From Bugula neritina (lineage: Eukaryota; Animalia; Bryozoa): 64,000 bases of DNA. Within the stretch, counting starts at the first letter, position 1; the number at the start of each line of letters is the position of its first letter. The position numbers were made by a program, and so were the translations under genes. The stretch is from the NCBI GenBank assembly GCA_964035545.1, contig OZ037766.1, forward strand, positions 2,356,001-2,420,000, written 5' to 3'. Below, piece after piece: positions 8,384 to 46,900 of this stretch. The notes below the pieces were generated by a model. The model ran no database searches and was not told the origin of the DNA. It worked only from the letters and a program-made list of their open reading frames with translations.

Positions 8384-8450
8384 TATAAAAAGTTTCCAAA
8401 AACCCGATTATGGCCAGTTCCTAAGAAGTTCTGCTGCTCATTGCTGTTTG
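8384..8450 (+). promoter_or_regulatory. Core promoter and non-coding first exon of peptide gene 1
   Basis: TATAAAA at 8384-8390, initiator-like CCAGTT at 8414-8419 (~31 nt downstream), donor GTAAGT at 8451, acceptor TTTTAG ending at 8727. Confidence 0.65.
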
Positions 8451-8543
8451 GTAAGTTTGCTATTACTGGAAAATATAGTGTTGTCAAAGTATCTTACACG
8501 CAGTTAATTTATTTCACATTCTATATAATAATTATCTTTAGCA

Positions 8544-8544
<1 letters not shown>

Positions 8545-8606
<62 letters not shown>

Positions 8607-8624
8607 TATATATATATATATATA
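8545..8624. repeat. (TA)n microsatellite in the 5' intron of peptide gene 1
   Basis: Direct TA run. Confidence 0.95.
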
Positions 8625-8759
8625 TTATAGTAATACATTAACTATTTGCTTGAGCAATAATACTATGAATATAATATTTTAGATTGTATAATAGCCTAGT
8701 CAAAATGTTTTTGATGTTTTGTTTTAGATATTGGTTCGGTTGAGAATATAAAAACCAGA

Positions 8760-9515
8760 ATGAGAGTTCTTTTTTTCCTATTGGCTATTTGCATTGCTCT
8801 TTCTTCAGCTTTTCTTTATCGTAGAAGAATCGGTTTCGGGTATAACAGAGGATTTAGGTAAAAGGACATTATATGATGTGTTTCAAAACCTATAACTTCT
8901 CTTTGAATGCTTAAATTGTTTTGATAAATTAATTATGCTTTTACTTGATTTTACAATACATTTCTCTTATATAACTATTTTACCGTTGCTCAGTTAGAAT
9001 TTTGATTATTGCAGAAACGTTGGATTCCGCAGGGGTTTTGGCAGGAGATTTGGCGGTGGTTTCTATAACAGAGGGGTTTCTGTTCGTAGATTTGGTTTTG
9101 GAGGATCTGGCCGTAAGTTTTAGCAGTAACTTGAAAATACCTGTAAATCTTAGCACCTGCAATCTATATTTAAATTAGGTAATAAATGTAATGCTATTAA
9201 TTGATCAATATTTCCAACTGTTACTGTATATAAATAAAAAAAATTTAAAATTAAGGCTATCATTTTGGGAACAATTGATACTATATACTTGTAGATTTTA
9301 AAGTATTAGCTAAAGAAATGATTCCTAGAAGTAAAAATATGCTAAACAGTTGTACTAAATTAATCTGCTCTTGTAAGCATGTGCATGTGTTGATATATAT
9401 ATAGTCATAAACATTTGATGTACACAGTCTAAATTATATATAAACATATAACCTTGCTTATATTTAAGTGGATTCAAATATATAAATTTGTATTTTATTT
9501 GTAGACTTCTTTTAA
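8760..9515 (+). CDS. Secreted Arg/Gly/Phe-rich peptide 1 (68 aa); exons 8760-8857, 9015-9112, 9505-9515
   Basis: Spliced translation: MRVLFFLLAICIALSSA-FLYRRRIGFGYNRGFRNVGFRRGFGRRFGGGFYNRGVSVRRFGFGGSGHFF*. GT-AG introns in phases 2 and 1; hydrophobic signal peptide. If the last intron is retained the peptide ends GRKF* at 9123. Absent from the ORF track. Confidence 0.85.
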
Positions 9516-10554
9516 AAACATTGAAAACATGGACGTGCTTCAAACGTTATCTATATGGACAATTGTTTGCTGGTCAAGAAATATTAAAATTTGATGCAGT
9601 ACTTTAAGCTTTTCAGTTGTGACATGCTCATACGTTACTTTCTTTTTGCTCTGGTTAATGCATTAACAAATTTGTCTTGCTTTTTCAAATTTAAATTACT
9701 TCATTTTAACACTTTTTTCTGTAAATAATAAGTGTGTGGTGTTTAGGTAACTAAAACTGTTTTATGGCTAAACTTTATAATTTTTTTATTTATCTAAAAA
9801 TAAATATTTATCTGCAGTGAAATGTATTTGCAAATACTTTACCAGAGTTTAATGAATATTTTCACAACTTATTATGAAAAAACTTAACATATGTAGAAGA
9901 CCTATTCTGCAAAATGTATATGCCCATTATATATCAAAGTGATGGTTTATGATACAAACTTTAATATATTTAGCCTGGTATATTTGTTACAAATATGCAA
10001 GTTATGATCTACTAAGAATCGGTATGCTGGCCCATTCTGTACGTCATATTAAATTCCCTGAATGATATTTTCAACACATTCTGTCCTTGGCTCCTATAAC
10101 CTTAAAATGGTTATATCCTGAATACTATCTTAGTTGTGAATGCAAATAATTAATTTATTAAAAGATATAGAAGTTAAATACTGCTTGAATGAAAAATTTG
10201 TTATTTAACTTAAACTAAAACGCAAAAAAATAAAAATTAAAGTGACAGTTGGCACTATATGGCATAAAACAAAGAACATTACTACATTGAAAATTTCTGC
10301 ATTTTAATAAATCATATGTATAGTTTCTTTTTGGGAGTTATGCTCTTTTCTATTGGGCTTGTATTCAGCATATAATTGTTGTCAAAACAAAGGGAAATGC
10401 TTGATAAATAACAAAACGCTTATAATAAATTATTTGCACTGTATATTATCATAGTAACTATAATTATATGTAATTTTAAGTTGTTTTTATAATATATATG
10501 ACGTGTTTGAGAATAAAGGAAATTCTAACGAATATCAGTTTGAAACTTGCTTAC

Positions 10555-12248
10555 TCGATCTGACCTTAATGACCCCAGGACTTTCCAGGAGGACCAGGAG
10601 GGCCCACTTGGCCAAGTCGACCTGCAGGTCCAGTGTCTCCTTTAGGCCCTTTGGGCTCAGTGCTTCCCCTACTTCCAATGCTACCATTAGGCCTGTTTGG
10701 GCCTGTTGGTCCTGTTGGACCCTTTGGTCTAGTTGATATTTTAGATCCTGGTGATTCATTTGAGCCTCTAGGGCCAAGTAGCCTCTGTATAGTTGCAATA
10801 AAACTAATTATATATACAGTAACCACTGCAGCTCATAAGCTTTGGCTGCAGACATCCTTGCTGAGGCTAAAAGTACTTTTTTGCATGACTGCCTTCATCT
10901 ACGGATCTGACAAACACTTTCCAGGTTTATGAAACTTACCTGAGAACCTGGGGGTCTGGAAGGACAGCTACAAGATCTATGATGAGCTCCTCTTTTCTCT
11001 CTCTAAAACTTGTCAAAATATATAATTTTGATTTTGATTATGGTTATAAGTATGAATTGCTTTTCGTAAAATTCGATTATCTAATCAGTTATAGTGAGAT
11101 CAATGTTGAAAGATATAAAATCATCTTATTACAAAACTCAATTATTTGATAAATTTATGTATTATGCACTGTAATTATTTGCATTTCAAAGATAATATCT
11201 GGAAACAATGTTACTTACTAAAACCTCTTTAATATTAGCACCGTTTGTAACTGTTTTTTCAAGTTTACTATTTGATAATCTGATAACTTTAACCTCCAGC
11301 TTTCCAATCTTTTGGCTCCCTTACATAACATAAAACAAATATATAAAAATGCTCATATATTTGAATTATTAGTTGATAATATGTATAGTCATCTATAATT
11401 TACCAACAAGCAAAATTTCAGTGTTTTGGAGTACAAAAGTAGAGGATGTACAACTGGCTATAGCATACAATTATAATTTCAAGGAGTTTTGCAAAATAAA
11501 TTATTGTTTATCAAAAAAATTATTAAAATATTTTTTGATATAATTAGATTTATTCAAATATTTTTAAATAAACTTTGATTTTATTTATAACTTATTCAAT
11601 GAGTTTCCAAAACAATTTATAAAAATAAGTTAAAATCAATTAGTCTATGTATCTAGCTTTCTAGGTTTGTTTTTTATTTAAAATAATTATTATATAAACA
11701 TTTTTTTTTTAAAATAATATATTTTGAAACAATACTACATTGCTGTAAAAACAATTAAATATAAAGCCATCAGCAGTGACAATAAAACATAAGCTTTTAA
11801 TTTGTCAAATTATTTGGCGTAAATTATTACTAGCTATAAGAGTGTAAAATTTTAAAGATTTAATCTCAATTTAAGCATGAAATTAATTAGCATTATATAT
11901 AGTATAATTTACCAGCTTTTTACAAATAAAACGGCAAATGTTATTATAATCACAATCCTTAATTAAAACACATAGTTAGCTTAGCAAAATTTTGTGAGCA
12001 TTAGTATTTTTAAAAATAGCTAATGTTGATGCCCATAAAACTCTTGCAGTTTAAAATGCAATCACTTTACCTTTTCATATCTGCATAGATGTAATTTATA
12101 AACCGACCTGATTAAAATGTTTGAACATGTAACCTGCAAACATAACCATGTTAGAGATGACCAAACCAACAACTAGTAAGCCAATCAAAGCATTGCCATA
12201 GCCATATTGGCTTTTAGTCCAGCTTTGTTTGAATATAAGTTACTGCAT
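10555..12248 (-). pseudogene. Decayed type II transmembrane collagen-like gene (MACIT/gliomedin/EDA-type layout)
   Basis: Exon 12108-12248: MQ*...NALIGLLVVGLVISNMVMFAGY (TM segment, early stop). Exon ~11219-11318: SQKIGKLEVKVIRL. Exon 10940-~11008: furin-like REKR then CSCPSRPPGSQ. Exon 10555-10784: about 23 Gly-X-Y triplets with 6 Gly substitutions and a TAA stop. Confidence 0.7.
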
Positions 12249-13706
12249 ATCTTAGCAAGCAAAAAACAATTTATATTATTCAAGTTAAACTTTTGAAATT
12301 TAAAGACATCTTCCATAATAATTTTTAAAACAGATTGACAATTAAAGCAGTTTGTTGGAAAATATTTTGTAAGCTAACTTATAAAACTTGAGCTGATTTC
12401 TTGAAATTAATAGCTATATATATGCTATATAGCTATAGTTATATAAAATAAATGCATATAATTGTAAAATAAAAATTTACATAAAACTTAAAACTTAATT
12501 TGCCGGTGTAGTGAGTTGTAGGGAGATGATACCAGAAACTTTAAGGCTGCTTTGCTGTCTCATTCTTATTCTGAGTCTTTTATACTTTCCAATGAGAAAA
12601 TTTTCTGTAATAATTAATGTACACTAAATGATAAAATATTGCTGCAATGGCGTATTTAAACACCGTAGAAAATAAATCATAATAAAATTCTATATATGTT
12701 ACCCTGAAGCAAAATAATGTAATTTTAATGCTTGTTAATTGTAATAACACCAAATTGAAAAATTGGTGTTATTTAATAATTTATTTACAATATACTTTAG
12801 CAAAGCAAAATTTTGCAACATTTTCCATATCCATTAACCTGGCAAATTGTCTTATAGGATCAAGAACAAGTTAATAATTTGATATTATAAGCATTTCATC
12901 GTGCTCTTAACTTATTGTTTGTTGAACAATTAATTGTGTACAATATTTTTCATGTCATTGCTTTTATATAATCTATAATAAATGTAGTTATATATATTAA
13001 TAATCAAAAACACAATCATATTGCATCCTTTATACATTGTAGTTCAGATTAAGTGTAAACAATACCACTCTAATATGACAAGCCTTACCAGCATATAATA
13101 TAGTTGAACATTACACTACACAACTATCATATGCTTCATGCTTTTAGTAATATATGCATATATATACATATAATATGCACAATTAGATATATAATATATT
13201 AAAGTAATAAAATAATGTTTCAGTTCTGTAACTCCAAATTATTTTAATAAAGTAAAGTACAAATTAGGCATGCAATAAATTGATGTGGTTTTGTAACCTG
13301 CAGTTTCAACAAAAATTAATATTCAAAAGTTAATTATGTTAACTTAGTTATACTTAGCAATTATATTTACAGTGTTCTATTTAAGCTATTTCAATACATT
13401 TTATATCATAGCAGCATAATACTGGTCATAAGGATGAGTGGTATATAGTCCAGTAATGCAATTAGATGTTGTAGCATGTATTAAAAGTATAACTTAAGCT
13501 TAATCTTACAAAAAATATCAAATAATATGATTAATAGTTATAATAATTTCATTTAGTTATCTGTTTATACAAATTTAGATCTCTCTACAGAGTTGTAAAT
13601 AATTCTATAGTTTATTGCGTAAAAATATTTATATATTACACAATACTTATTCGGTCTTTATAATATTTAGTTTTTTAATATTTAACATTCATGACTACTA
13701 CTATTA

Positions 13707-13707
13707 C

Positions 13708-13747
<40 letters not shown>

Positions 13748-13755
13748 CTGCTGCT
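13707..13755. repeat. (CTG)n trinucleotide repeat
   Basis: Direct; produces the poly-Cys ORF 13615-13845. Confidence 0.9.
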
Positions 13756-14244
13756 ACTATACTAGTACTGCTACTAGCATTATTACTGTATACTACATAT
13801 ACTTATACTATAGCAAAATGCTATTTCAGGTTTATTACCTTTTAAAACTATAAGGTTAACTTATTTTAAATAATGATTGAGATTTCAAAAAACATAGAAT
13901 CCATGTAGCCTGAATACTTATAATACAATATTATATTTTTGTACCTTAAAGTAGTATAAAAGTATGACTGATAGAATATATTTAATTTATAAACCGATAA
14001 CTATATAGCTATTTTGAAAATATATCCCATAGCCATAACATAATAACAGAATAAGATGCTTTATAAGTAAATACCATACTTTAACATGCATATAGTATAG
14101 TATTTTATATTAGTACTATAATATTATTTTAAAAGCCCAAAGGCATGGTTATAGCTAAGAATTGGAATAAGCTCCCATTGTCAAAAATTGCGTCTTTCAG
14201 GCCAACGTTTCAAATAGCTTTTGACAACCAAGTCCAACTTTTAG

Positions 14245-14412
14245 CAGGGTCAGAGTCAATTACATATGGATGTAATTAATTACAATTACATTTACATGAA
14301 AATTTGTCAATTACAAATACAATTAAGTATAATTACAGTTAAAATTATTTATATAATTAATTATAATTACGCAATTACATGTTAATGTAATTGTAATTAC
14401 AATTGCAATTAC
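14245..14412 (-). mobile_element. Diverged, longer relative of the MITE at 24436
   Basis: CAGGGTCAGAGTCAATTACATATGGATGTAATTAATTACAATTAC...TTTGTCAATTACAA aligns to the reverse complement of 24566 inward. AATTAC motifs recur to ~14705. Confidence 0.7.
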
Positions 14413-15465
14413 TTTTGTTCTATATAAAAGTTATATATAAAAGTTATATATAATCTCCCTTGCATAGGGTGCAACTACCCAGGGAATTTTGACAGTGGAG
14501 AACCTCCTTTGTTTTCAACAGTGACTAATAGGGTGATATAATACTACATTGAATCAATTCAAACTTTCTATTAGACAGTATAGGCATGGTAGGAAATGTA
14601 TAAAATTTATAAAATTGAAAAGTTTGAAGCAATAGACATGTAATTATAAAGTAAGTGTAAAAGTCAATTACATTAGCTATGTAGTTAATTACAATTACAA
14701 TTGCATAATAATATACATTTTCTGCAGAAAAAATAACTTAAACAATCATGCTTGGAGTTGGTTTGCATGCACTGCTGCAAGCATGGTATAAAAATAATTT
14801 TCTGAAATTTAAATACTATGATTTTAAAATTTAGACAATGTTTTTATTATTTGGTAATATTTGTTTGAATATTATTTTTATCTATTATGTATATTATTAT
14901 TTAGCATTCTTATTTTTTGTTTTTCATAATCAAATAATTTTTTAAAATAATTTTTAACTTAAATGCTGATGCAATTTCATAAAAAAAATTTGTTTAGTTG
15001 CGGAGAAATTAAGATTAAACTGGCGCAATTATATGTCATAAAAGTTAAGCAAAAATATTTTTATGACAGTATTTAGAGTTCAATCTATATTACAGTTGGT
15101 GATAATTTTCAAATTTACACTGATGCCTTAGACTATCTAAGCTAGAAGCACACTGATTTCTTGCAATGCCAAAAGTAAATGCTGCAATTAAAATATAATT
15201 GATCAAAATCTAGTCTGAATAAAATTAACAATTTATTACAAAATCAACAAAAGGCTTCAACAAATAACAGCAGCTAAAACTAGGTCATTCGTATCATCAG
15301 GTTTAACAGAATGTTTGAAAGATTTAACAACAATTCAAAGTATAAAAATAAACGTAGTTGTAACTTTTGCCTTCGTGTGTTAAAAGTTTCAGTCGGTTGG
15401 GGAGGGGATAGAAGTGGTCAGGGTTTGGGATTGTTAGGTTCCTATGAGTTCTCCGAACAAGTATT

Positions 15466-16345
15466 TTAGTACAGAGCTGTAATAATAATGTTTTAGTAAA
15501 ATACTTTGCACAGGGGAAGGTACTGATTTAGATAATATCACTTCTTAAGAATGATTATATAGTATAATATTATATTGCAAATATCCAATTGAAATACCAA
15601 CAGAGCTAAAACAATGCAACCGATAAACCAGATACTAGTTTTTTCACAATATCTTTTGAACTAGGATACTTTTTTACACAATAACAACGCATATTAATGT
15701 TAAAAATTGAAAATCATCTGTCAAACTGTTTGATATTTTATATCGATTAAAGTTATCACTCGATCGTTGGTGCTTTTACCATATACAACTGAAGATCAAG
15801 TCTGAGAAATAGTTGCAGCTCATTGAAGAAAGACAAAATACTTTAAAATTTGTTAAACTCTAGAGAATAGCTCACAACCACTGAGATTATAAACAAATCC
15901 AAACCATATACGGTTTGCCAACATGGTATAATTAATTAGCAATGAGATAGTATGACTTACGTCCAAATCTGTTGTATCCTCGGCCAATCACACTGTGTCT
16001 ATAAACAAATATTATATAATAAATTAATATTTAGTATAAATTATGACATTGTTTTTAGCATCTACAGTATAATGATGAGTTTTGGCAATAGATTTACTGC
16101 ATCAAGTTAAATAACAAAGCATATATTTCAAATCTCAGTTAGTTATACCTGAAACCACCAAATCTTCTGAATCCGCCGAATCTGTTATAGCTGTTGTACA
16201 CGCCGCCAAATCTCCTTCTCACACCAAAGACACCACGGTTGAAACCAACACGGTGGCCAGCGAACCCACGGTTGTAACCAATATGGTTAAATGCGGCAGC
16301 GGCAAGAGCCAAGCAGACAGCAAAGAGTACAGCAATGACCTTCAT
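15466..16345 (-). CDS. Secreted Arg/Gly/Phe-rich peptide 2 (81 aa); exons 16345-16149, 15998-15961, 15476-15466
   Basis: MKVIAVLFAVCLALAAA-AFNHIGYNRGFAGHRVGFNRGVFGVRRRFGGVYNSYNRFGGFRRFGGFRHSVIGRGYNRFGPLY*. The 38-nt middle exon (TTTATAG acceptor, GTAAGT donor) encodes the family motif GRGYNRFG. The choice of last exon is less certain. The unspliced form is the 68-aa ORF 16139-16345. Confidence 0.85.
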
Positions 16346-16569
16346 GATGAGAGAATTGGAGTTCTAAATATAAATAATATTTTCACCTAATTATATAAAT
16401 ACATAAAACATAAGATAAAAAGGTTGTAGACCAATTGCAAATAATAATAGATGCAACTATTGCTTTTTTTACATAAACAAGTTTTATGGTGAAGCAATTA
16501 TAAAGAAAATATTTCAGTAAAACTAAAATATAAGAAAATAAAAACAAATGTAAAGCCGGTAATACTTAC

Positions 16570-16644
16570 GTTGATAACTGGAGTAGTTATGTTGATGCTA
16601 TTCTGTAGAATATGACTTTCAAGTTGCTCTCCTTCCCTTTTATA
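16570..16644 (-). promoter_or_regulatory. Core promoter and non-coding first exon of peptide gene 2
   Basis: Minus-strand TATAAAA at 16644-16638, donor GTAAGT from 16569, acceptor TTTAG ending at 16364. Confidence 0.65.
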
Positions 16645-17239
16645 CTATTCGGAGATTGCTAATGGAGTTTGAAAGTTATTAATACTGATTAATTAGACTT
16701 CTACACCGGCATGTATACCTGATCATTATAGCCACCATGTTGAACTTAACGTATATTATAAGTTTTAATTAGCATACATATTAGGATGGTTATAGTATGC
16801 TTTAAAGATGCTTTTCAATCTATTCATAGAAACTGCTATATAACAACTTTTTATAATCTAAACTATTTTCAGGAGTCTGCATGAGACAAAATTGTGTAAC
16901 TCGGTTAAGTTGCGTTTATGGGAATGTATTGCACTTGTCGAGATTAAGTAATCTGTAAGCTGAAAAAGTTTCACTATAATTATATGTGTACATGTCAAAA
17001 AGCAGACTTGAAATATAACAGAAAGGAAGGCACAGCTTTGTACCTTGTCATAAAGTATTTTATTATAGCTTCTTCTGCATTATTACTATAATTATTCCAA
17101 CTTATTCAAACTTCTTAAGCATATTACTAAAAATACACTAATTCATATATATATAAGTGAGATTTTTAACTAAAGAGAAGAATTGATGAGTTAAGTGTAA
17201 ATGTACTTAAGATTATTTATCTAAATAAAAAAATCTTAA

Positions 17240-17442
17240 GCAAGTTTATAGTCACTATCCCTGTGAGAAACCCCTGATGGAAAGGGTTTTTTGTTGAAGT
17301 GGGCTAAGGACTTATTTAAATAAGGCGCAAGAGCAATTATGACTGGATGCTCTTACTAACATCACCAATGGCCTTTGTCAGGGCTCGAGCCCATGACCTC
17401 GTGTTTACTAAGCAAACCAACCCCTAGACCACAGCTGCTCCC
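17240..17442 (-). mobile_element. tRNA-derived SINE, copy A
   Basis: A-box-like TGGTCTAGGGG and B-box-like GGCTCGAGCC; aligns over ~200 bp with 33765-33966. Confidence 0.8.
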
Positions 17443-20400
17443 TCACATTTACAAAATGTGTTTATCCAAATACATTTTGTACATGTAACAGCGGCAGTAA
17501 GTTAGATCAGGTTTTCTGTTTGATTAAAATAATTAATTTAACTTGGGGCAATATTGTACATACAACTATCAATTTTATTATAACCACAACTTGAAGCAAT
17601 TCCTTTTTAGCTCAACACCTTTCTCATGCATTACACTATTTTAGGAATTTTTTAAAAGATTGCAAACTAATTTGACACAGGCAAATTATACATGACTCAT
17701 AGTGGCTAGCTGCTGCATTTTATCAAAACCTCCTTTATAAATGTTCAATAAGCTAAATTGAATATATATGTCTAGAAATCTTAAACTTTAAAATTTGTTG
17801 GCCAGAAATGAAAGTAATTATATTATAGCTCTAGTATAACAGTAATGCAGTTACATTCTTTTGTCTGGCACAGCATTATCTTAAATGTTGAAATATTTAT
17901 CAATGTAGAGAAAACTGTAGCCCAGTGTGTATAGGAAAGCCTGAACCTTATTGCATCTAGTAGGCTATATAGTTGAACCTTGACCCTCAGCATTATCAGC
18001 TAGTGAAAAGAGAAACTCTGGTTAAATTCTTTATTAGAAGTTTTCCTGAGCTTTTTGTAAGCTGCTGTAAAGCTGCAAGACCTTTGTGTTTAGCAATTGT
18101 AGGTAAAGCAAAGTTTCGGAAACTCCGGTAAGACTTCTTTCAAGTAATAAATTGATGTCTATCAAAAAAATCAAATTAATCAGATGCGTATAAATGCTAA
18201 TATGTATGTTAATTAGTATATATGAAATGTTATAAAATAGAGTGATAAAAAATAAACCACTTCTGAAACTATTTAGGAAATAAGGAAAGCAATCAAATGC
18301 TAAATAATTAAATTGTAAATACTTCATTCAACAGAAGATATTTCAACACTGCCTGTTGTGCCAGCTGTACCCTTGTACCAAATACCATGCTTTCGTGCCA
18401 CATTATGCCTACCACCTCCGCTAGTGTCCAAATTTCTAATTAATTATGGTAATTGCATAACATGCATATATAATTAAGGACATAGTAATTCAATTTACAC
18501 AGTTTTTTGTACAATTTAGCCATCAATCTAGATTTAAGTAGGAAATAGTAAAGCAAACTTCCAATGGTTGCTGAATCATTTCTATTTCCTAGTTTAAGTC
18601 AAGTACAAACAAAAACTTTAAAGCTTGTTTTGGCAATACTCAAGCGCTTCAGAACTGGCATAGCTTATGGTGCAGGTGCTATGACGCTGTAGCCTATGCT
18701 GCATATTGTACTAAGAAGCCATTGAAGGCACAGAAGCTATTCAAACTGTGTCCTATCAGTTTATTTCTGCTTTCATAACTTGTATAAAATAAAATACTTT
18801 ATACTTAATGTATAGGTGTGTGTAATTAATTGACAAACCAAAGGGAACAAGTTAGAAAAAATATATTTATATATAAACAGTAGTGTTAGTAGCAAAATAT
18901 GGTGGTCACTATGTTATTATACAGATAATAATTTATATGCATATGCACATGCACGGTGTCCTTATATTATAAGCTTGGAGTACAGTATGTATGGGTATCT
19001 AACTTCTTGGGTCGTTTATACAGAGCTCAGTAAAAGTCATTTTAATTGAGAAAATAACAAATAACAGCAATTAAAGAAAGGGTGCTGCAGACAGATTATA
19101 ATAAATTCAGAGATAATATTATTATAACTATATTATACATTTGGCTATTGGTGGGCAAATAATATTATGTTGAATGCTAAACACTAAAACGGAGTTTTGT
19201 TTTAAACCATGGTGCACATTCACTGTAGATATAGCCCTAAAGCATCAACATAGCTAGGTATATGGCACAGGTAGGGCAAAATTGACAGTCATCCTAACCA
19301 CAATGGTTATATAACCACATGTTGAGTATAAGTCAACAAAAAGTAGTGGCAATATTTTGAGAAAGAAACACAAAGTTGGTGAGGTCACCAAGTGCAATGT
19401 TTGGGGAAAATAATGCCTATACAATGTACTCAATGTTCCAGAAGTTTGCGCTGCTTCTATAATTTTTCCACAAAACAGTTGAATCACATCAGCTACAACT
19501 TGCAATGCTTTAAGAAAGGAGCTGCTGTTGACGCAATAGAAGCCCATGATCATTTACACAAGACTGCTAAAAGTATTTTTAGTTAATTGTATATTTTAAA
19601 AATTCATTTCTAACACGAGTCATTTATCTCAAAGTTGAAATTAGAAAACCACTTCCAATTTGCAAAAAAAATTAAACTGCATTACATAATTTTTTTCCAT
19701 AAAAATTCAAATTATTCAGATTAATAATTAATCAGATTAAAACCAGCTACAGGTACAATTAAATTAACTAATACATAAATAAATAATATAAAAATGAACA
19801 TAATAATTATAATTTAATTGAAAGTTAAAGTTTGAATAAATTTATTAAGCTTCTTTTTAAGTGTACCTTTTTTGAGAGTGTTATGTAATTTTTATTTTAA
19901 GTATAGAGATTTCAACTCCATGGAAACAAGCAAACCATTTCTCATTTAATTATAGCAGCCATTGCTTTCGTATGCTTCAGATTTTGCTTTTCTTCAATTT
20001 TCTTTGATTATATTATCTTTAGAACTTCACGTGCTCTTTAATAACTTCCATAAATTATATTTGAAGCTATTAAACAACATGTTTGAACAGCTGTCCTTAA
20101 AGTTATTAATTAGTTCCTTATCATGAAATTAGCAATTAATTTTGCAGAGTTTAAATGTTGATTTGGTAGCAATTAATAAAGATAAATTATTCAGCAATTT
20201 TAGACTATGGTAGATTTACCCACTTGAAGTGTGTCAATTAGACTACAAACCACTTGTGAGTCACCCAAAGTAAAAAATAAGTTTCGGAAATCTTACCAAT
20301 TATTTGTGTATCAAAACATGCAGTGGTCTTTCTATAGCTTTAACTCACATATTATATATACACTAAGTCGCAAAATATTATGCTTTCTCTAAAAGTGCTT

Positions 20401-22229
20401 TTAATCATAACTTTTGCTTTAGCTTTCAACCAGGCATTTTTAAAGATGTTGAAGCTTATACCATATGAATAAAATTTTAAGCTTAAAGTAGAACTTAGAC
20501 AGTTAGCTTAATAAATCCCTTTAGAAAGTTTAATCTTTTCAACTGAATGATATAAAATTAAAATATTATAGATCTTCAAAACTCACCCACAGTTATATAT
20601 CACTATAGAATTTTAACAATAATATATATGATATATGTACAAGATAAGTAATTTGGGAATATAATGATGTAAGTAATACAAATAACCTGTTGAGATATTC
20701 TTTTATTCACAATATATAAAAATATTTTTTGATATTTCGAGACAAATAGAAACATATAATACACTATAATTAACTCAATACTCTACTTCTAGTGTGCAAC
20801 TGAATTTAAAAAAGTGCATAATCAACATTTACGTTTTGATTTAATGAGATTGAAACAAACAGGATGCACCTTCATACCAATGCTAATCGATTCCTTTCCA
20901 TAATCAGTTTTTTCAGGTATATGCATGTTTTCAGCTTTCATTTAAGTTTGCAAGTAAAAAAGTTTATTCAATTACTTTATAGTTTTAAGAATTTTAATTT
21001 ATATAGTTATTGCAACTTACCCACTGTTCGATTTCTAAAGTATTTTTACTACTATATTATAGGTAGCATATATAAGCCATAATAACTTGCACATGGTTAT
21101 AGGACTATAATAGTATAATATGTTAAGCCAAGTTTACCTTGTTCTGTATTTCTGCAAGTGTTTTAACAACAACCAATGGCTGTTTCGCCAATTATGCAAT
21201 ATTTTCTTGTTTTCTTATATATATTAGGTACCAGTCTGTGTCAAAGTGTGCCATCGGTTCATAAATAATCTCCTGAAATATTTGTTATGTACAGGAGTAT
21301 GTTAATCTGAAATGACCACAGAAAGATATTTTTAGGCCTTTGAAAGACTTTTTGTGAGTGCATATTTTTATCAAAATTGTTTTAATTAGTTTTTGTACTA
21401 TTGTAAACCAAAAATATTACAACGAATTATCAATCAGTAAAAACCTATATTATTACAGTCTATGTGAGGCGTTCACTTAATGCAAGCGTAGCTTTTGAAA
21501 GCTAAAATTCACAGTTGGTATTGTGAGGTTACTTAGTCTAGGCTGTGTTTACCTAATAGATTTTTAGCTCTTGACTTTGTTTAAACAGCATTTATACTAG
21601 AGTTGCTATCACAGGCAAATTCCCATTTCTATAGAAAAAAGTGAGTTGTCACCATGGTTACATGATACACATTATAGTAGTCCTGTACACCTAATTTCTT
21701 TGGTTAATAATATTAGAATATATACAAACTTAAATCAAGTCATTTATATTATATATTTGCATTTCAGCTAAATTTTAAATAATGTAAGATATTTTGTTAT
21801 GTTTAGCTTGTGACTTAAGTATGATGCACCTTTTTTCCAAATTGGTATTTTTAACAAAAATATTTATAAAAACATTTCCCTTTATTTTAAATGTTATAGT
21901 AATCAATTTAGGTTATTTTTGAACTTGTATAAGGCTTTACCAGCTTTCAAATATTATATTTTTGAAAATTGTAGCAGCTATATAAAAAGATAGACCTGTA
22001 GCCTGTTTAATAAATAAATGAAATGTAAAATGAATTGGATTTAGTTTTGATCTTTTTGCATTTTTAGTAAAGGTTGAACTATTGAACTTAGTAAAAATTC
22101 TAGAACAGAAATACTCTGCATAATAATTATAATTAATCTATATAATGACCCATTAGCAGTTTTTGTTGTTGCATAATGCAAGTCATACTGGAAACAGATA
22201 AGGAGATGATTAATTATAGTGCAGACTAG

Positions 22230-22312
22230 TATATAAAGAAGTGGTAGATCTATTACCAAGCAGACTCTGTTTGTAACTGCTTCTGTTCATTCACCAACCG
22301 TTACATTTAAAG
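22230..22312 (+). promoter_or_regulatory. Core promoter and non-coding first exon of peptide gene 3
   Basis: TATATAAA at 22230-22237, CAGACT at 22261, donor GTAAAG at 22313, acceptor TTTGTAG ending at 22640. Confidence 0.65.
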
Positions 22313-22658
22313 GTAAAGTTTATTACAATTTATATTTTACATACATCGATTGTAAGAAATTACTTCTTTTAATTTGCTTTTAAATAGTCGAACTTTATTT
22401 GACTTTTAAAACTATAATTTCTCTTGGCTTGCATGCAGTAGCCTTTTTAGTTTTGATATTTGCAGTTCAAAGTTGAAAAACTACATGCATTGAAAAAAAG
22501 TTTTTTTTAGCTATTTGTTGTAATTTCAAAGTCACTCTAAAGTTTAAAATCAAATTGATAATTGTTCTCTAGTAAAGAGTTATATACAATAGAAAATGTA
22601 ATGATTGAAAATACAACAGATCATGCATATGTTTTTGTAGGATTCCAATTCTCTCATC

Positions 22659-23534
22659 ATGAAGGTCATTGCTGTACTCTTTGCTGTCTGCTTGGCTCTT
22701 GTCGCTGCCCAATACACCCGAGGCTATGCCAACCACAATGTTGGTTACAACAGATACCCTTATGGTGGAGGAAGGTCGTACAATAACGTGCACAGAAGGA
22801 GATTTGTTGGCCGCAGGTGGGTTTTACAAAATAATTATAATATTATATAATTCAACCAAAATTTAAAGTATTCACCAATAAGTTGTTTGCATAAATTTAT
22901 CAAGTTATATAACCCCTTTTTAATAACAGAGCTTTAAGCGTATATGATTGATTGTTATATGCACTTTAATTTAGGTAAATCAATGGGTTTTTTTTCAGAC
23001 GACCTTACGGCAGATCTTACAACAGATCTTACAACAGATCTTACAACAGATCTTACAACAGATATTCAGGTAGGTTATTTTACAACTAATGATCAAATGC
23101 TTTGACCTAATTAGACTAATGGGTGATTATGACATCTCATCAACTGCATTCAATAATGCTGTTAGAAAAATGTCTTGTTGCTTTTACCAGCTCAACGTAT
23201 TCTGTATTCAACTTGTTTTATCTTGAATAGATGATTTTATACATATTATTTTATCAACATTTAAAACATGATGGCTACAAAATAAGCCTACTGGAGTTGA
23301 GTCGCAGTTAAATGTTCACGTATAGTTTAAGGTTTTGCAAAATTGCTGAAGGCAGATCATTTCTGTATAAGTGTTTCTTATTTCATTCTTGAAGCACCAC
23401 AGTTTAGGATTTGTTTATACCATTATAATATTGTTACAATCTTTGAGATTATTCATTATCTATATGCAATTTTCTATTGACTCTCAGTTATTATTAACCA
23501 TGTTACTCTTTATATAGGATCAAACTACTACTAA
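22659..23534 (+). CDS. Secreted Arg/Tyr/Asn/Gly-rich peptide 3 (81 aa); exons 22659-22816, 22999-23069, 23518-23534
   Basis: MKVIAVLFAVCLALVAA-QYTRGYANHNVGYNRYPYGGGRSYNNVHRRRFVGRRRPYGRSYNRSYNRSYNRSYNRYSGSNYY*. GT-AG introns in phases 2 and 1; 246 nt in frame. Confidence 0.87.
23012..23062 (+). repeat. Coding 12-nt tandem repeat (AGATCTTACAAC)x4 = (RSYN)4
   Basis: Four perfect copies inside the middle exon of peptide gene 3. Confidence 0.95.
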
Positions 23535-24435
23535 GACCAGCCTACGCCCACAAAACACTTTCGAGGATCGAGCAGCTATAATATATCAAGTAACACTTTC
23601 GAGATTTTACAAGAACATAAATAACCTAAAATGGCAGCCAACATAGATGAACTTTATAAGTAAATCCAGTTTCTCAATGCTACCCAGTTAGTAGCATAAA
23701 ACATCTTAGCGAATTGGTTTCTTTTTGATGTGTTTATATTGAAACTAGATTTATGTTATATTTTTGTCGTTTTACTACAATTTGTTAATTTTACTGATTT
23801 CATAATAAAAAGTGCATTCATGATAAACTGTCTAAAGTAAAGTTATGTATTCTGATAAAGCTTTATTGAGTGAGTATATAAAATCTACTTTCAACATGCA
23901 GCTGAATAAGTACGTGTCTCTAAAATGTTAACAATAATCAAGCACAAGAGCTCGGAGATTAGCTAAATATCTAAGTACTCAAAAAAATACATATTCGGGT
24001 AAATTTTGATGCAACATGCTTTTATAGCACTTGAAAAGAAAAAATCTTGCATGAAAACGATCTTACTATATGTTGGAGTGATTAAGCTTCTTTTAATGTA
24101 ATAAGCAAGCTTCGTTTCTAAAATTTGCCTAGTAATATAGGCTGAGTCTACAAAATATAATAGTTTAAATGCATAAAACAAGTAGCCTAATATTCTGCTA
24201 TAAATAAAAAGTATTTGTTTCAGAATGTGCCTTGCTAAGTATATCTGCTATAACATTGCCGCGCACCAGCATACTATGAGTTATTCAGCATTTCTAATCC
24301 ACATGTATTTGACTATTATTGCAAATTCATCAGAGTTTAGAGTTGTTTTACCTTGCACAAGCTGATCCATAAAAGCTTGCAGCATAACAACATTTGACCA
24401 AATGAAGATACAGCTTTATTGCTGTAACAAGCAAC

Positions 24436-24566
24436 CAGGGTTGGGGTAATTGTAATTGTAATTAATTACATTTATATATCAACTGTAATTATAATTGTAA
24501 TTGACAAATTCTCATGCAATTGTAATTGTAATTAATTACATTAATATGTAATTGACCCCAACCCTG
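24436..24566. mobile_element. hAT-type MITE (131 bp)
   Basis: TIRs CAGGGTTGGGGT / ACCCCAACCCTG; 8-bp TSD CAAGCAAC / CCAGCAAC (one mismatch); internal GTAATT repeats. Confidence 0.85.
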
Positions 24567-26217
24567 CCAGCAACACAATTATAATTACCAAATCAAATAT
24601 TTTATATTTTTACAAATGATAGCTCCTTAAGCAGAAACTACGTTACAGTTAGTATGTAGCAGGGAATGGAGTTGTCTTTTCTCTAAATACCAGGAATCAA
24701 AATGGAAGGCTACATCTGAGATATTGTATGAACACCATTGGTCATTTAAATTTTACACTCTGTCTTTATACAAATAGAATATTTGTATATTTTTCATGGG
24801 CTAAGTGAGTATAGACCTATATATGTAAAGGCATTGTTACAAAGCCATGCACTTCTCCGACATAATTAAATTGGTTTGAAAAAAAGAAATTAATTTTACA
24901 TTGACACTTAATGCACTAGCATGTATGAGGTGCCATATTCAATACAAATATCAATATATATTTGTTTATTTATTTATAAATTATTTTTTATCCAAGGCGC
25001 ATGGCCCAATAGCGATTCTGAAGTATCTAACTTGTTCTCATTCAATAAATAATTGAGTATAACTGTAAACTATGCTCTATATTATTAGAATCCCTGCAAG
25101 GCACATCACATTTATGCAGCCTATCAAATTATTCAAAGAGATTTTTCTGTCATTTCATAATTTTTTGTTATTGTCGAAAAACTTATTGCACTGATTCTAT
25201 ATTTATACTGATATATAATTCTATAATATAAAATATGGATCACAATAATTATATGTCGACAATATATTCATAAACTTATATATAACGTTATAACCAAATT
25301 ATGCACCCTGTACTTTTATATTATAGCAAAAGGGTATAAAGATAGCACTGCACAGATATTTATGCTGTAAAATGCTTAAAAATACAAAATGTTCTACATA
25401 TTAGAAGAAAGTTAAATATGGCCATTGGCATGTGCATTATATAATATTTTCTCTCTGTTTGATAATAAAATCTCAACTTCACTGCACCATGCAATAAGTA
25501 ATATATTATGGGGTTTAGCTAACCTTATATTCATGAAAATCATTCACTTGAGAACAGGCACTAAGCAGTCTTTCTATCAATAGGATTTAAACGAACACTA
25601 TTTACAGCCTGCCACTCAAATATTTGATTTGTTTCTTTTACAAATCAAATGAGAACAACGTTGCTAGCTATGCATGGATTGATGCAGCGATGAATAAAGT
25701 ATGCACATGCTATTGTAACCAGAATAAAAAAAAGCTGTATGCAACAATAGATTTTTTGTTCGCAATCAAAAGAATGAGCAAATATTTGATTGTATACGTA
25801 GTGCAAGCTGAAGCCTAGTAAAAGAAAGACTGGCTTGTTAGCTGCATGAGCTGTATATTTTCATCTTAACAGAGTTCTTACTGCAAAATATAACTTGCAG
25901 CATAAAGTGTAGCTGGAGATATGAAATATCATAAGGTAAAAATCAAATTTCTAAACATTATATTGTGTATCTAATATTATTATGATAAATATGACTAGTT
26001 GCATTAATTTCATATATATATGTTTTGCATCTTCGATATAAATTATAACAGAGAAAAAATTCAATTTGTATCTGCCATATAAATACTATTTCTGAAAGAC
26101 TTTGTTTGAATTTGAAAGGACATATAATACGTGAGTGCTCGTAAATTATATATATACAGTTAATCCATATCTTAAAGAATTACTGAAACACTCCAGCTAT
26201 ATGCAGTGTAAAATAGT

Positions 26218-39753: not shown

Positions 39754-42700
39754 CTGAATGATGAGGAAATAGCATGTTTCAAGAAGGATTACTTGTTACA
39801 ACCTCATGGTAAATACGACCTCAAAGTGCAGATACCTCATCTAATCAAGCTAGCAGAAGGCTATCAGCAAAGATATAAAACTCATCACCATTGGACAGAT
39901 GCACTAAAGGTAACCAATGATGTTCAATTACCCAGCCCATGCCTAGCAGATTGGTCAATAAAATCATATGTATGAATATCTTTCTTATAATGTAATACAG
40001 GGTCTTGTATATATAATAGCTTAAAGTAAGCCTTTCAATGCGCACGAAAATATTATTTCTAAAAAAGTCAAACATTTTTCTGTTGCAGTGCCATGCTTTG
40101 TACAACTCAGTTGCCGTCAGGTCCCAGAATAGTGAAACTGACTGGAACCTAAAAGCTTTTCAAGTTCAGCAGATGTTTTGGAAAGACAAAGTCACACTTT
40201 CCTATGAAGAACAGAAACAAATTACTCAAAGCCTCTCTACGTATCTACAGGAAACTCGTATGATAATTAGACAGAACCTTGCGACAGCTGACAGCACCGT
40301 AAAAAAGTTTGCTATTCTACCTGAAGCTGAATTCAATTTAGACACGAAGCTCTTAAGCCATTTCTATGAGTCAATCTCAGAAATTTCTAGCCGCTGTACA
40401 AACAGAATGGTTGAGCTGTCCAGGCGTGTTTTCAACTATTGTGTGAAATACATGAAAGACCGCCCACCTTGTTCTTTTTCAGTGGTAGCAATTGGCTCAA
40501 TGGCTAAAGGAGAGGCAACTCCCTACTCTGATTTAGAGTATATGTTTGTAGTTGAGCAAAAGACCCAGGAGAATCTACGTTACTTTGAACTATTAGCAAT
40601 CATAAGCTACTTCTTTATTGGAAACCTGCAGGAAACTAAGTTGAGTTACATGTCTGTCGAGGAACTAAAATGGTTTGAAGATAAGCAAAAGAATGGCTTT
40701 AAAATTGATGGCTTAGCGGAGGGGGCGGGCAATATTCCAACAGGAAATGGCACCTCAAATGAACCAAATCATTTCATCGTCACGCCACAGGAGTTGCTAA
40801 CAAAATACAAATTAGTTCTAGACAAACCGAATAAGGAAGAAGCCAAGCGTGGTGATTTCACAGCAATGCTGCAATACACACGTCAAATCTTCTGTTACGG
40901 AAAATGTGGGGATTCTCTCTTGAACGAATTTGTCGACCAAAAGTCAAAAATAATCTCAAACAGAGAAAGAAAGCAGATTAATTTAGACATGTTTGAGGCT
41001 GATGCTAAAAAGTACAGCTTCAAACCATCAGAAAATCTGATTGCGAAAGGTTTCTCAGTTGACAGCAAAAAAGAGCTTTACCGATATCCTTCAATACTGC
41101 TTTTCAACATTTCCATTCTCTATAACTTCAGTGAAGCTACATCTTGGTCAACATTAGACAGCCTTCTTGCTAAAGGAATAATTTCTCGTTCTGTTTTTGA
41201 ATCACTAACATTTCTTTTAGCATGTGCTTGTTACTTCCGGTTATCAGCCTATCTCTATCACGACTCTCACGACGACAGACTATCGGTGCTTCCCGTGAGC
41301 GAAATATCCACTGAAAGTAACGCTACGAGCCCAGTAGTCAGGCGGTGGTATTTACCACAAGGCCTCTTCAACAAGTACTGTCAGTATTCTATACCTCTAA
41401 AAGCGCACATTAGCAAATGCAGGACAAAAAATCTAAATGAACTTTTAACCTCAGCTATCCAGCCTCCATCTTGGTTGATCAAATTTCAGACTTTTCACTA
41501 CTGTCATCGTTGGACAAGTGCTTGGAAATATTTCGAAGATTATGTAACTGAAGAAACTGCTTTAAATTTCCCTGAAAAGGCTCTGCAGCTAATAGAGCAG
41601 GAATCAAAACCTGATTTGCAAGAAACTTGGAATTCAGTGAAAGCACTTATTTACCTCTTGTTTCAAAAGAGAGAGCACAAAGCTGCCCTGGCATACTGCG
41701 AAGCCATTCAGTTGAGGACTGAAAGATGTGATAGCTACAAACTTACCGAAGACAGGCGTTTGCTGTCGAGCGACGTGCTTGATTACATCGCTGCTGCCAA
41801 CATTTATTTAGACAATCACCAAACAGCTCTAGCTGCATACACCGAGTCACTCAGTATTAGAGAAAGTATTCTTGAGTCAAACCATGAACTTATCGCTCTG
41901 GCCCACTACAATTTGGGACGTTGTTATCGAGTTCAACACGACTACGATCAGGCAAGTATCTTCTTAATGAAAGCGTTGAACATTTGCAGCAAGAACCAAC
42001 AAGTATCAACATCTGGAGTGATGAGTGGTTACGTTGAACTGTTAGACAGCATAAAGACACCAACAGTGATGCTGACACAGATTGTTTGGCACCTCGGCCA
42101 ACTATACCAGGATTGCAAGTTGTACGAGATGTCAGTGGCATATCTAGACAAAACTAAAAACATGTTTCTGGAGTTGTATGGGAGTGATGCGTACCACAGA
42201 AATATCACGGATATATATTACTCTTTAGCCCAAGTTCTTGATAAATTAGGTCAGACAAAGCAAGCCGATCAATACTACAGAATATCTATGACTGTTATAA
42301 CACAGCTCTTTTCTCAGGGAAACATGGAAAAAGTTCAAAGGCTACACAATTTAGAAACAAAGTCTGATATCGATGCTAACACAGCGTTTGAGTACTACAA
42401 GTTTATTCTAGACACATTTCTTGAGCTCCCAGGCTACAAAAAGCCTCACCCTACTTCAGCTAATGTGTTGAAACACTACGGCCTTCACATGATCAATGTT
42501 AAACAGTACGAGTTGGCTTGCAAGACATTACGCCTATCTTACAAAATGTATGAGAAATCTTCAAAAAATGACTGGCTGAGTATGGATCTCGCAAGTGCTC
42601 TGTCCTTTCTGGCAATGTGCCAATGGAAGAGGGGAGATATAGCTGAGGCTATTAGCACATATACTCAGAGTTTAGAGCTGCTGATGCCAGTTTCGGGCAA

Positions 42701-42887
42701 AGCAGCGCTGCTGAATCTCGCTGAAATTGAGAAGCAACTCGGCGATTTGTACCAAAATGAAAACGACGCAGATCGTGCAAGACATTATATGCTAGCTGCC
42801 AGAACCCACTTCCTGCTGGCGTGGGGCTCTGATACCCATCCTATGAGTTTAGAAGTAGAGAAAATGCTCCATAGACTGCCTTCATAA
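39754..42887 (+). CDS. Nucleotidyltransferase (GlnD/DUF294-like) + helical domain + TPR-repeat protein, at least 984 aa; exons 39754-39909 and 40089-42887, start exon unresolved
   Basis: Pol-beta-superfamily motif VVAIGSMAKGEATPYSDLEY, followed by KKELYR...FRLSAY helical region and TPR-like repeats (IALAHYNLGRCY, DIYYSLAQVL, LASALSFLAMCQWKRGDIAEA, KQLGDLYQNE). The first 17 codons of the ORF-track model lie in an intron (acceptor TTGCAG at 40088). Confidence 0.88.
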
Positions 42888-43901: not shown

Positions 43902-46900
43902 TTAATGGTACAATCCCAGTCCAGGGAATTCCTCTGGGGTGAATCCAGCGGGCGCCTTGAATGGGTCGGGTAAGGAGGCAGGATGGCGGCAGATGGGGCA
44001 TGTGGGGGAGCCCTCATTCACCCACTGGCTTACACACTGAAAGGGAAGGTGGTGAAGCATTAGAATACAGTATTCCAGTAGCAATAACATAATATATTAT
44101 GTATATAATAATATATATCATCAGCTAGAGGTCTGAAATGCATGCTTAAATTATTGCTATGAATACAATGCAATTATAGGAGTTAACTTCTCTTGCACAC
44201 AGCATTAACATATCACAAAAGAAATAATCTAATAAAAAATTAAGCTACAACTTTTAAAACTTTATTCTTTGAATATAATTTAAAAAACACATAAGTTCAT
44301 CAACTCTACAAGCAAATGATAAGGTTACCAAGTCAACATTAGTACGTTTAGAGTTATCTTCCCAGACAGTGATAAACTAAACTATCATGTAAATACAAGA
44401 GCCCACCTTATCATGGAACTGGTCGTGGCCACATTTGAGCTTTATCTTCTTCTCTTCAATCGCTCCGTGACATATGACACATTCTTCCCGGTCACCCTAA
44501 CAGAAAGAGGAAGTGATGTCACACATGGTAACCAACGCAATGGATTCACAAAAGTAATTAACAACATGCAAGATATACAGCACTGAGGAGATAATTCCAA
44601 ATAAGAGAACATGGAGGTATTCCTGAACCATATCAAGTTTGAGGAAACTTCTGTTTAGTACTGAAGTTAATCATATATTTATATCAAGTAGATTACGAAA
44701 GGTTAAAAGCTCTTAAAAAGACAAAGTTGAGCAAATTGATGTGAATATTGATTAAATCTGACTACACGAAATTCGGTTAAGTCAAAGAAAGTTTTGTTTG
44801 CACTTCACAGCAAATAGCCGCCCACAGCAAGTACACTAGCAGAAGGAGTGTTTCTACCTGATAAACCTCTTTACACATCAAACGGAACAGCTTACTTACA
44901 AACATATTATTCTTAGAAAGACTTATAAACACAATTCCATTTACACCAGATTTTGCTATAACATACACAGGCATCAAGCTGAAATCCTCGTACAGCACCC
45001 TACCAAACTACTACCAGCCAACAAAACACCCTTAGCTAAAAAAACTTACCAAGTTAGGAGGGTGTTTATCCTCCCCTGCCCAGGGGTCATACTTTCTGGT
45101 GGCGGGAATCAGTCTACCACCGGTTGAAGCCACTTTCTTCTTTCTATTCTCCAGCTCGGCGGGCTTCTTTCTCAGCTCATCCTTAGAGTGAGCGTACACA
45201 CACTGCAAGAACATGGTGTTAGTAAGAACATGGTATGAGTATGCAGCTGGTAGAATGTGTATCATGCTATATAATTGTGATACCTTAGTGCCCACTGAGA
45301 AACAGTAGAGCAAAGTTGTTACTATTTATAGATTCTGCTTGAATAATATACTGTACAGAATAAGCACACTCTAATGGAGTCATATCTTGAGTTTGTTATT
45401 TGATAGACACAACGAATAACAAAAAGAATGAAACAAGAAAGCCATCTTTTCAATTTGTGTAGATTTAATCAATACCAACCGGAGTCAGTCACCTAATGTA
45501 AGAGAAGTATATTGAAACTGTGTTTACAATCTGAACGAGCAGAGCAGCAGAGTAATATCAAACAAGCAGGGGACACAACTACGCCACATTTCAAGTCAAA
45601 ACGAATATACTCAAAGGTATGATGATGTACTGAACATTTTAAAAGACTAAGCAACACAGTGTATTATAAAAAGTAAAAACATATCATACATCATACAGAG
45701 GGGCCACACAGGGTAACAGATTGCATTTAGTTGGCCTCAGTTTCTTCCGACTATTCACCGTACACGCACCTTTTCTGGTTCCTTTTGATGCACACAGGCT
45801 CTTCTCATGTGCTTCTCACAGAGTTCCCATTTTGGCATTTTCTTAAGTTCCTTATTGCTGTGAGCAAAGCGACAGTCCTTGCCCTGCTTACACAGCCCCT
45901 TCTTGTACTTGGTGCACCACCCCGTCTTACGGAGAAGGAACTCGAGCTTGGCAGGGCACAGCTGGTTGTCGCAAGGCTCTTCGTGTGCTCCAGCCACTCT
46001 GTGCTGTAACACACAGCAACAAAAACCTTCTGTCACTCACTTTACACTTTCCATGTGATTTTAAATCATTGAAATTTATTAAATCAGAGAAACACCACCA
46101 AGTAGGAAAATAAAATGTCAAAGTTTCACGTGTATCGTTGCTTTCCAACAACACAGAATATAGCCTTAAAAAAACCAAGTTGTTCAGAATGAGCAAGTGT
46201 GAAGCTGTAGGTTGGCAGACAAGTGTTGGCAGCTGACTCAGATATTGACAGCAACTTAGTAGATGTACTTCTTATATCTGAACTTACACCAAGTAGATGC
46301 GACTGCTACCACTGAATCACTGATAAAGAATGTATACTTCAGAATTTCCAGTCAAGAATTGCACTTTACTTGGTGAAAAAACTTGAAAAAAAGACTTCTA
46401 ACTCACACCAAGTACAAACAAGAATCCTGATACTTCAGGACCAGTAAACAAGCTCTACACACTTCACTCAGTAAAAAAAAGGCACACACTTGGCTGCAAG
46501 AGGCAACCTACATCTTCCAAGGTCTCTCTTGGCCCGGCCAGATCTCGGCCAGCCTCTCCGAACTTGCGGAGATCTTTCTCGCCATGAGCGAAGAGACAGC
46601 TAGCGCCCCAGGTGCAGTGACCATACTGCATGTAGTACTTGCACAGCATTACTTTATACAGAGAGTGCGGGGCCGGGGCGTTCACTTCTCCACTACCACC
46701 CGGTCTCTGCAGAACCACAGGATATGACATCATCAAATGGTATGACATCACAACTGCTAATATTTCACTTCAACAGTTATAGCTACTAGTCTTGACTCAT
46801 CCGTTACTGCATTATCAGTCACATATAGGAGTAGCTCTACTGAGATATATACTTCATAATATAATGTGAAATCCTCACCACACCCGAATAACTACTAACT

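Follow-up and report, generated by a model that had tools for sequence, protein, structure and literature searches.

A conserved trio of putatively secreted arginine/aromatic/glycine peptide genes in Bugula neritina, an apparently undescribed subfamily of a large bryozoan peptide family

Small secreted proteins rich in glycine, aromatic and basic residues are, as a general kind, already well known. Mussel mfp-3 comprises 30-35 variants of 5-7 kDa with a Gly/Asn/Tyr/basic content and no Cys (PMC5132118). Tick-GRP77, a protein of tick cement, is disordered, Gly-rich and secreted, and in it Arg together with Phe and Tyr drives phase separation, as salt-dependent coacervation, along with ageing and adhesion (PMC11794139). 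In the nematode nlp-29 cluster, a signal peptide precedes a Gly/aromatic/basic peptide, and the genes form fast-diversifying tandem clusters (PMC2453101; PMC6780910). Here, we compare these systems with a locus of the bryozoan Bugula neritina, a complex of cryptic species whose assembly tzBugNeri2.1 holds 216.00 Mb in 320 scaffolds plus the mitochondrion (PMC11480708).

The window analysed is a 64,000-nucleotide stretch of contig C2. We inspected positions 1-24500 and rebuilt by script all three models of a gene trio (+, -, +) that spans 15 kb (Table 1). Each gene combines a TATA box and a non-coding first exon with a hydrophobic 17-residue leader, whose cleavage site was placed by eye and by alignment of the family. 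The coding introns are GT-AG; a phase-2 intron splits an Arg codon (AG/A), a phase-1 intron follows, and the last coding exon measures 11, 11 and 17 nt in genes 1, 2 and 3. The deduced mature peptides are 51, 64 and 64 aa long with 12, 12 and 14 Arg, share the motif GYNR in all three cases, and lack Asp, Glu, Lys and Cys, so that Arg is used and Lys excluded. The original prediction had given this gene structure, the intron phases, lengths, Arg counts, missing residues and motif, and every number proved right on rebuilding. A scan of the window for a fourth copy found none.

Table 1. Features of the gene trio (positions in the window) and distribution of the wider family (positions on contig C2)
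Feature	Position	Strand	Observation
Gene 1, coding exons	8760-8857, 9015-9112, 9505-9515	+	precursor 68 aa
Gene 1, TATA box	8384-8390	+	kept in orthologous locus L036
Gene 1, non-coding first exon	ends 8450, donor 8451	+	first-exon donor kept in L036
Gene 1, exon 2: 5' UTR, ATG 8760, 17-aa signal peptide, mature start; phase-2 donor in Arg codon	8728-8857	+	
Gene 1, exon 3, Gly/Arg/Phe-rich; phase-1 donor	9015-9112	+	orthologue differs by 12 nt, in frame
Gene 1, last coding micro-exon, 11 nt, peptide end H-F-F	9505-9515	+	stop TAA; TGA in orthologue
Gene 2, coding exons	16345-16149, 15998-15961, 15476-15466	-	precursor 81 aa
Gene 2, TATA box (16644) and non-coding first exon (ends 16570)	16570-16644	-	kept in orthologue
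Gene 2, exon 2: 5' UTR, ATG 16345, signal peptide, most of mature peptide; phase-2 donor	16149-16363	-	
Gene 2, exon 3, 38 nt; phase-1 donor	15961-15998	-	exon shared with NCBI model EB796_004447
Gene 2, last coding micro-exon, 11 nt, end P-L-Y	15466-15476	-	orthologue 14 nt, end L-H-Y
Gene 3, coding exons	22659-22816, 22999-23069, 23518-23534	+	precursor 81 aa
Gene 3, TATA box (22230) and non-coding first exon (ends 22312)	22230-22312	+	kept in L036 and L037
Gene 3, exon 2: 5' UTR, ATG 22659, signal peptide, mature N-part; phase-2 donor	22641-22816	+	
Gene 3, exon 3: 12-nt repeat (R-S-Y-N) x4; phase-1 donor	22999-23069	+	one copy in orthologue
Gene 3, last coding micro-exon, 17 nt, end N-Y-Y	23518-23534	+	identical in orthologue; NCBI model ends at same stop
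Family on C2: trio, and three genes just past the window	2.43-2.44 Mb (the three genes)		
Family on C2: main array, ~31 genes	3.23-3.44 Mb		
Family on C2: two genes	15.78 Mb		
Family on C2: four genes	19.85-19.87 Mb		

Genes 1 and 2 are Phe-rich, and gene 3 is Tyr/Asn-rich. The gene 1 peptide contains 12 Arg, 14 Gly, 11 Phe and 3 Tyr (22% Phe, 6% Tyr), that of gene 2 has 12 Arg, 15 Gly, 10 Phe and 5 Tyr (16% Phe, 8% Tyr), and that of gene 3 has 14 Arg, 14 Tyr, 10 Asn and 8 Gly (22% Tyr, 16% Asn, 12% Gly). In the same order, their masses are 6.0, 7.4 and 7.9 kDa, with net charges of +12 to +14 and pI values of 10.8-12. The signal peptide points to secretion and, with neither propiece nor Cys, to mature peptides that are predicted to be disordered, highly cationic and free of disulfides. 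The gene 3 peptide starts with Gln, which may become pyroglutamate.

Conservation argues that these models represent real genes. The orthologous locus in a second Bugula assembly (L036; GCA_010799875.2) is collinear with the window at ~80% DNA identity and keeps all 12 coding splice dinucleotides, the TATA boxes, the first-exon donors and the micro-exon stops. Exon lengths differ between the loci by 3, 12, 15, 3, 15 and 18 nt, each a multiple of three, against 15 of 39 gaps in introns; at the intron rate, the exon pattern has a chance probability of ~0.003. Across the mature regions, pN/pS is 0.47 overall and 0.20, 0.54 and 0.58 for genes 1, 2 and 3, the last value being inflated by repeat misalignment. 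That the models are chance or dead constructs is therefore extremely improbable, given these kept splice sites, frames, stops and TATA boxes, the pN/pS, and independent NCBI models for two of the orthologues. The one point in favour of such constructs is a read-run search whose 8.7-kb query hides small RNAs: it matched a single run, which behaves as DNA; mapped to 18000-23900, this run gave alleles, including T>N at codon 20 of gene 3, and no splice joints. The three genes are very probably functional and appear to be spliced as modelled.

Composition is held more tightly than sequence. None of the ~96 substitutions between the trio and its orthologues creates Asp, Glu, Lys, Cys or a stop, an outcome reached in 0 of 5000 simulations (mean 16.8). 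Those four residues are absent from all six mature peptides of the two assemblies, at sequence identities of only 65-87%, and repeats expand and contract in frame between assemblies. Selection thus bears more strongly on composition than on sequence. In the searches, each exon of a spliced model was used singly, and joined models served only for composition and substitution counts.

The orthologues are partly annotated. NCBI predicts the gene 3 orthologue as a 90-aa protein that ends at the micro-exon stop, equal to 80 aa from three coding exons plus 10 upstream in-frame codons. The gene 2 orthologue is EB796_004447; this model shares the phase-2 intron, continues past the last donor and omits the last micro-exon. 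An unspliced 68-aa frame of gene 2 is disfavoured as the main product because its stop is lost in the orthologue while exons 3-4 are kept. The expectation that gene finders would miss the trio thus held for gene 1, whose orthologue is unannotated, and failed for genes 2 and 3, whose orthologues are listed as hypothetical proteins. Other family members in NCBI are likewise hypothetical proteins of B. neritina: besides EB796_004447, they are _004439, _002701/2/5, _003886, _020104, _020869, _022568 and _010975/7, all unnamed and without assigned function.

No characterised family claimed the trio. Exact look-up of 10 proteins in the protein collection returned none, Pfam searches gave no peptide exon or paralogue above cut-off, and a feature search of the ESM Atlas gave no usable match; structure matches in the Atlas were disregarded, as they were based on a model with pLDDT 0.43. 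As predicted, protein, Pfam and metagenome searches thus revealed no orthology to a characterised family. A literature search, which covered few subscription papers and is not proof, found no description of the family, no paper on the EB796 proteins, and no study that names a cuticle protein, an adhesive protein or an antimicrobial peptide encoded by the genome of B. neritina; a Bugulina zooid expression study (PMC7534450) contained nothing relevant. The trio apparently forms a subfamily, not described before, within a large peptide family of bryozoans.

When the 216.0-Mb genome (321 pieces) was searched with profiles, at least 43 matches emerged at E < 0.002, all on C2; counts are lower bounds. 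The original prediction of a lineage-specific system of three was correct in seeing a lineage-restricted, secreted, cationic Gly/aromatic family and too low in its gene number. In most members, one exon holds the whole coding sequence; a TATA box and a non-coding first exon precede it, and a donor follows immediately on the stop. The trio displays the traits of the 3.23-3.44 Mb array, namely signal peptide, TATA box with non-coding first exon, YNR-type motifs and an aromatic C-terminus. Subfamilies differ in composition (Y/N/R, Y/N/G/H, Y/K/R/P and G/F/L); in the single-exon members, mean contents are 25% Tyr, 16% Asn, 13% Gly, 11% Arg and 0.2% acidic residues, and 22 of 34 end in Tyr. Several subfamilies consist of identical or near-identical copies with TATA boxes. 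At C2:3,407,841-3,435,030 (L039-L041, L048), for example, lie seven short Tyr/Lys/Arg/Pro members, including four identical peptides, with the donor directly after the stop. Outside Bugula, clear relatives appeared only in two ENA metagenome contigs (P0021, P0022).

Intron design links the trio to the more distant members. Two Gly-rich genes, at 19.856 and 19.860 Mb, also have a phase-1 intron followed by an 11- or 17-nt exon with an aromatic end, and the metagenome homologue L045 has a phase-1 donor at the same place; the phase-2 intron was seen in the trio only. Signals of genes 2 and 3 share 37-43 of 54 coding nucleotides with array genes, and that of gene 1, more distant, shares 33-38. What places gene 1 in the family is the arrangement of its introns, together with an exon that matches gene 2 (p 0.004). 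Deep branches in a tree of first coding exons are poorly resolved, and we therefore claim no order of events. Genes 2 and 3 are arranged head to head, and only 2 nt distinguish them across 68 nt of UTR and signal. At two sites in their signal exons, 16295-16363 (-) and 22641-22709 (+), both genes carry the same base within an assembly, but not the base found in the other assembly, a pattern that suggests gene conversion.

Another small secreted-peptide gene lies 4.3 kb past the end of the window (L050:4279-4799; C2 ~2,424,279). It has a similar leader; a phase-1 intron follows the signal, and a basic 40-aa exon carries four Cys in a defensin-like CxxxC...CxC arrangement with no Pfam match.

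Comparison with mfp-3 reveals both likeness and difference. The trio peptides, in the 5-8 kDa range, are predicted to be secreted, lack Cys and contain much Gly, Asn, aromatic and basic residue; the family has many variants (at least 43 genes) behind a conserved signal, and gene 3 and the array genes reach 19-25% Tyr. Genes 1 and 2, in contrast, have 23-27% Gly and only 6-8% Tyr and use Phe instead, and the trio lacks Trp and Lys. The mfp-3-like Gly/Tyr/Arg/Asn composition originally proposed for all three therefore fits gene 3, albeit with 12% Gly beside its 22% Tyr and 16% Asn, and the array genes, whereas genes 1 and 2 are Phe-rich. Against Pfam Mfp-3 (PF04202), the gene 2 exon scored 11.7 bits (E 0.35; cut-off 22 bits) and other exons and paralogues did not match, so membership is rejected for want of significant homology. 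By composition, tick-GRP77 is the closest chemical model for genes 1 and 2, although it has an acidic N-terminal half and a low net charge, and the trio peptides have neither.

Both functions first suggested, antimicrobial and adhesive/cuticle, are supported as the right candidates; sequence alone cannot separate them, and both could hold. We favour, at a probability of roughly 0.55, the reading that the trio peptides, disordered and rich in Arg, aromatic residues and Gly, serve as building blocks for cuticle or adhesive and condense through cation-pi and pi-pi contacts. In this scheme, hypothetical as to site of use, condensation and cross-linking, the precursor would lose its signal peptide to yield a secreted, disordered 6-8 kDa peptide of charge +12 to +14. 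Such peptides would form a bulk part of an extracellular material, either cuticle and frontal membrane or a larval or colony adhesive. The stickers would be Arg and aromatic residues (Phe in genes 1 and 2, Tyr in gene 3), with Gly, Asn and Ser as spacers. Seawater salt would screen the charge and permit condensation, possibly with polyanions or acidic partners; the condensed peptides would wet a surface and age into a solid, after which peroxidase could cross-link their Tyr residues, among them the one that often ends the peptide, or these could be converted to DOPA. Consistent with this, composition is the conserved trait of the trio, and amplified near-identical copies are what a need for dosage would lead one to expect. 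The reading also draws on the behaviour of Arg and aromatic residues in tick-GRP77 and on a size, make-up and number of variants reminiscent of mfp-3.

The same composition and tandem clustering also occur in the nematode NLP/caenacin defence peptides, which counts against the cuticle or adhesive reading. Linear, extended, cationic Gly/aromatic-rich antimicrobial peptides of the NLP-29/caenacin kind are the main, though rather unlikely, alternative; they would be secreted from epidermis or gut, bind anionic envelopes or nucleic acids, and control fouling microbes or symbionts. Such a role would suit the high charge and pI, the N-terminal Gln of gene 3, and a signal that is conserved before a variable mature region (pN 0.03 and 0.15). 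A YGG[YW]G motif occurs once each in five relatives; the trio, however, lacks YGGYG/YGGWG and is richer in Arg and Asn than the nematode peptides, to which no homology was found. With pN/pS below 1 in each of the three genes, there is no sign of positive selection, a weak negative for this role. Two further weak negatives are an amphipathic pattern that is absent from the trio, with hydrophobic moments at 100 and 170 degrees no higher than those of shuffles, and the lack of NF-kB-type sites near the trio and in 14 of 14 representative promoters. By the same hydrophobic moments, the peptides do not fit the amphipathic helical antimicrobial class, with its segregated hydrophobic and cationic faces. 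Seawater salt weakens many linear cationic peptides, another point against a defence role.

In the promoters, Grainyhead sites, a cuticle-type motif, were not enriched, a result that argues against cuticle or adhesive use, and neither were AP-1 or GATA sites, the latter a further difference from the NLP-29/caenacin system. An Ets-like motif (p 0.01 among 11 motifs) and the top 7-mers (p 3e-5 among ~8000) were not convincing after correction.

The genome has 87 heme-peroxidase exon matches, with several tandem arrays (C3 1.19-1.24 Mb, C7 9.24-9.28 Mb and C9 8.06-8.14 Mb), although the many other uses of peroxidases weaken their support for a cuticle or adhesive. The tyrosinase domain, by contrast, has one match (a lower bound). 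This single match and the few Tyr of genes 1 and 2 lend little support to a DOPA glue of the mussel type in their case, and their Phe-richness would make them largely DOPA-independent. A more far-reaching version is doubtful: the family would be the protein base of bryozoan cuticle or settlement glue, independent of mussel and tick adhesives, with genes 1 and 2 as its DOPA-independent Arg-Phe cation-pi coacervating part, maybe also keeping the surface free of microbes.

Two other roles are less consistent with these peptides. They could belong to a calcification matrix or to a coat of egg, embryo or ovicell, and mollusc shell and periostracum do commonly contain small secreted proteins rich in Gly and Tyr. 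A similarly organised oyster protein scored E 0.97, which is not significant, and the trio lacks acidic or Ca-binding residues, making this role improbable. Short signalling-peptide precursors cut at RR/RRR sites would explain the signal peptide and the many polybasic sites, and amidated fragments could arise from the Gly-Arg-Arg of genes 1 and 3. Gene 2, however, lacks Gly-Arg-Arg, the fragments differ between paralogues, acidic spacers and repeated conserved units are absent, and the copy number exceeds 40. The accessible part of a B. neritina neuropeptide survey (PMC4990251) describes no such peptides, and we regard this role as very unlikely.

B. neritina is a model fouling animal, and the family provides short, synthesisable candidates for adhesive/cuticle or antimicrobial function, which makes the question of glue or cuticle versus antimicrobial testable. 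Were the peptides structural, they would represent an independent origin of mfp-3-like chemistry and supply natural Tyr, Phe, His and Lys variants for work on Arg-aromatic condensation in seawater and on antifouling. Were they antimicrobial, bryozoans, whose defence is usually credited to small molecules and symbionts, would possess a large defence-peptide family.

The window contains several further features. Between genes 1 and 2, a small gene (10566-12240, -) joins a transmembrane-like hydrophobic exon near 12200 to an exon of collagen-type Gly-X-Y repeats at 10566-10826 (Pfam Collagen, E 5e-6); the orthologue of this gene, which looks like a short membrane-anchored collagen, is a 132-aa hypothetical protein (L036 13423-15169). 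AATTAC units recur in a short dispersed element that is AT-rich, occurs in both orientations and possibly represents MITE ends; it lies at ~14270-14410, 14640-14705 and 24440-24570, and L036 11918-12050 matches 24447-24567 at 76%. Downstream, 40038-42887 (+) is an intronless 949-aa ORF with DUF294/nucleotidyltransferase and TPR repeats. At 45000-50400 (-), CCCH-zinc-finger-like ORF pieces and a Gln-rich exon are probably parts of one spliced RNA-binding protein gene, and a 19-nt tandem array occupies 46897-47750.
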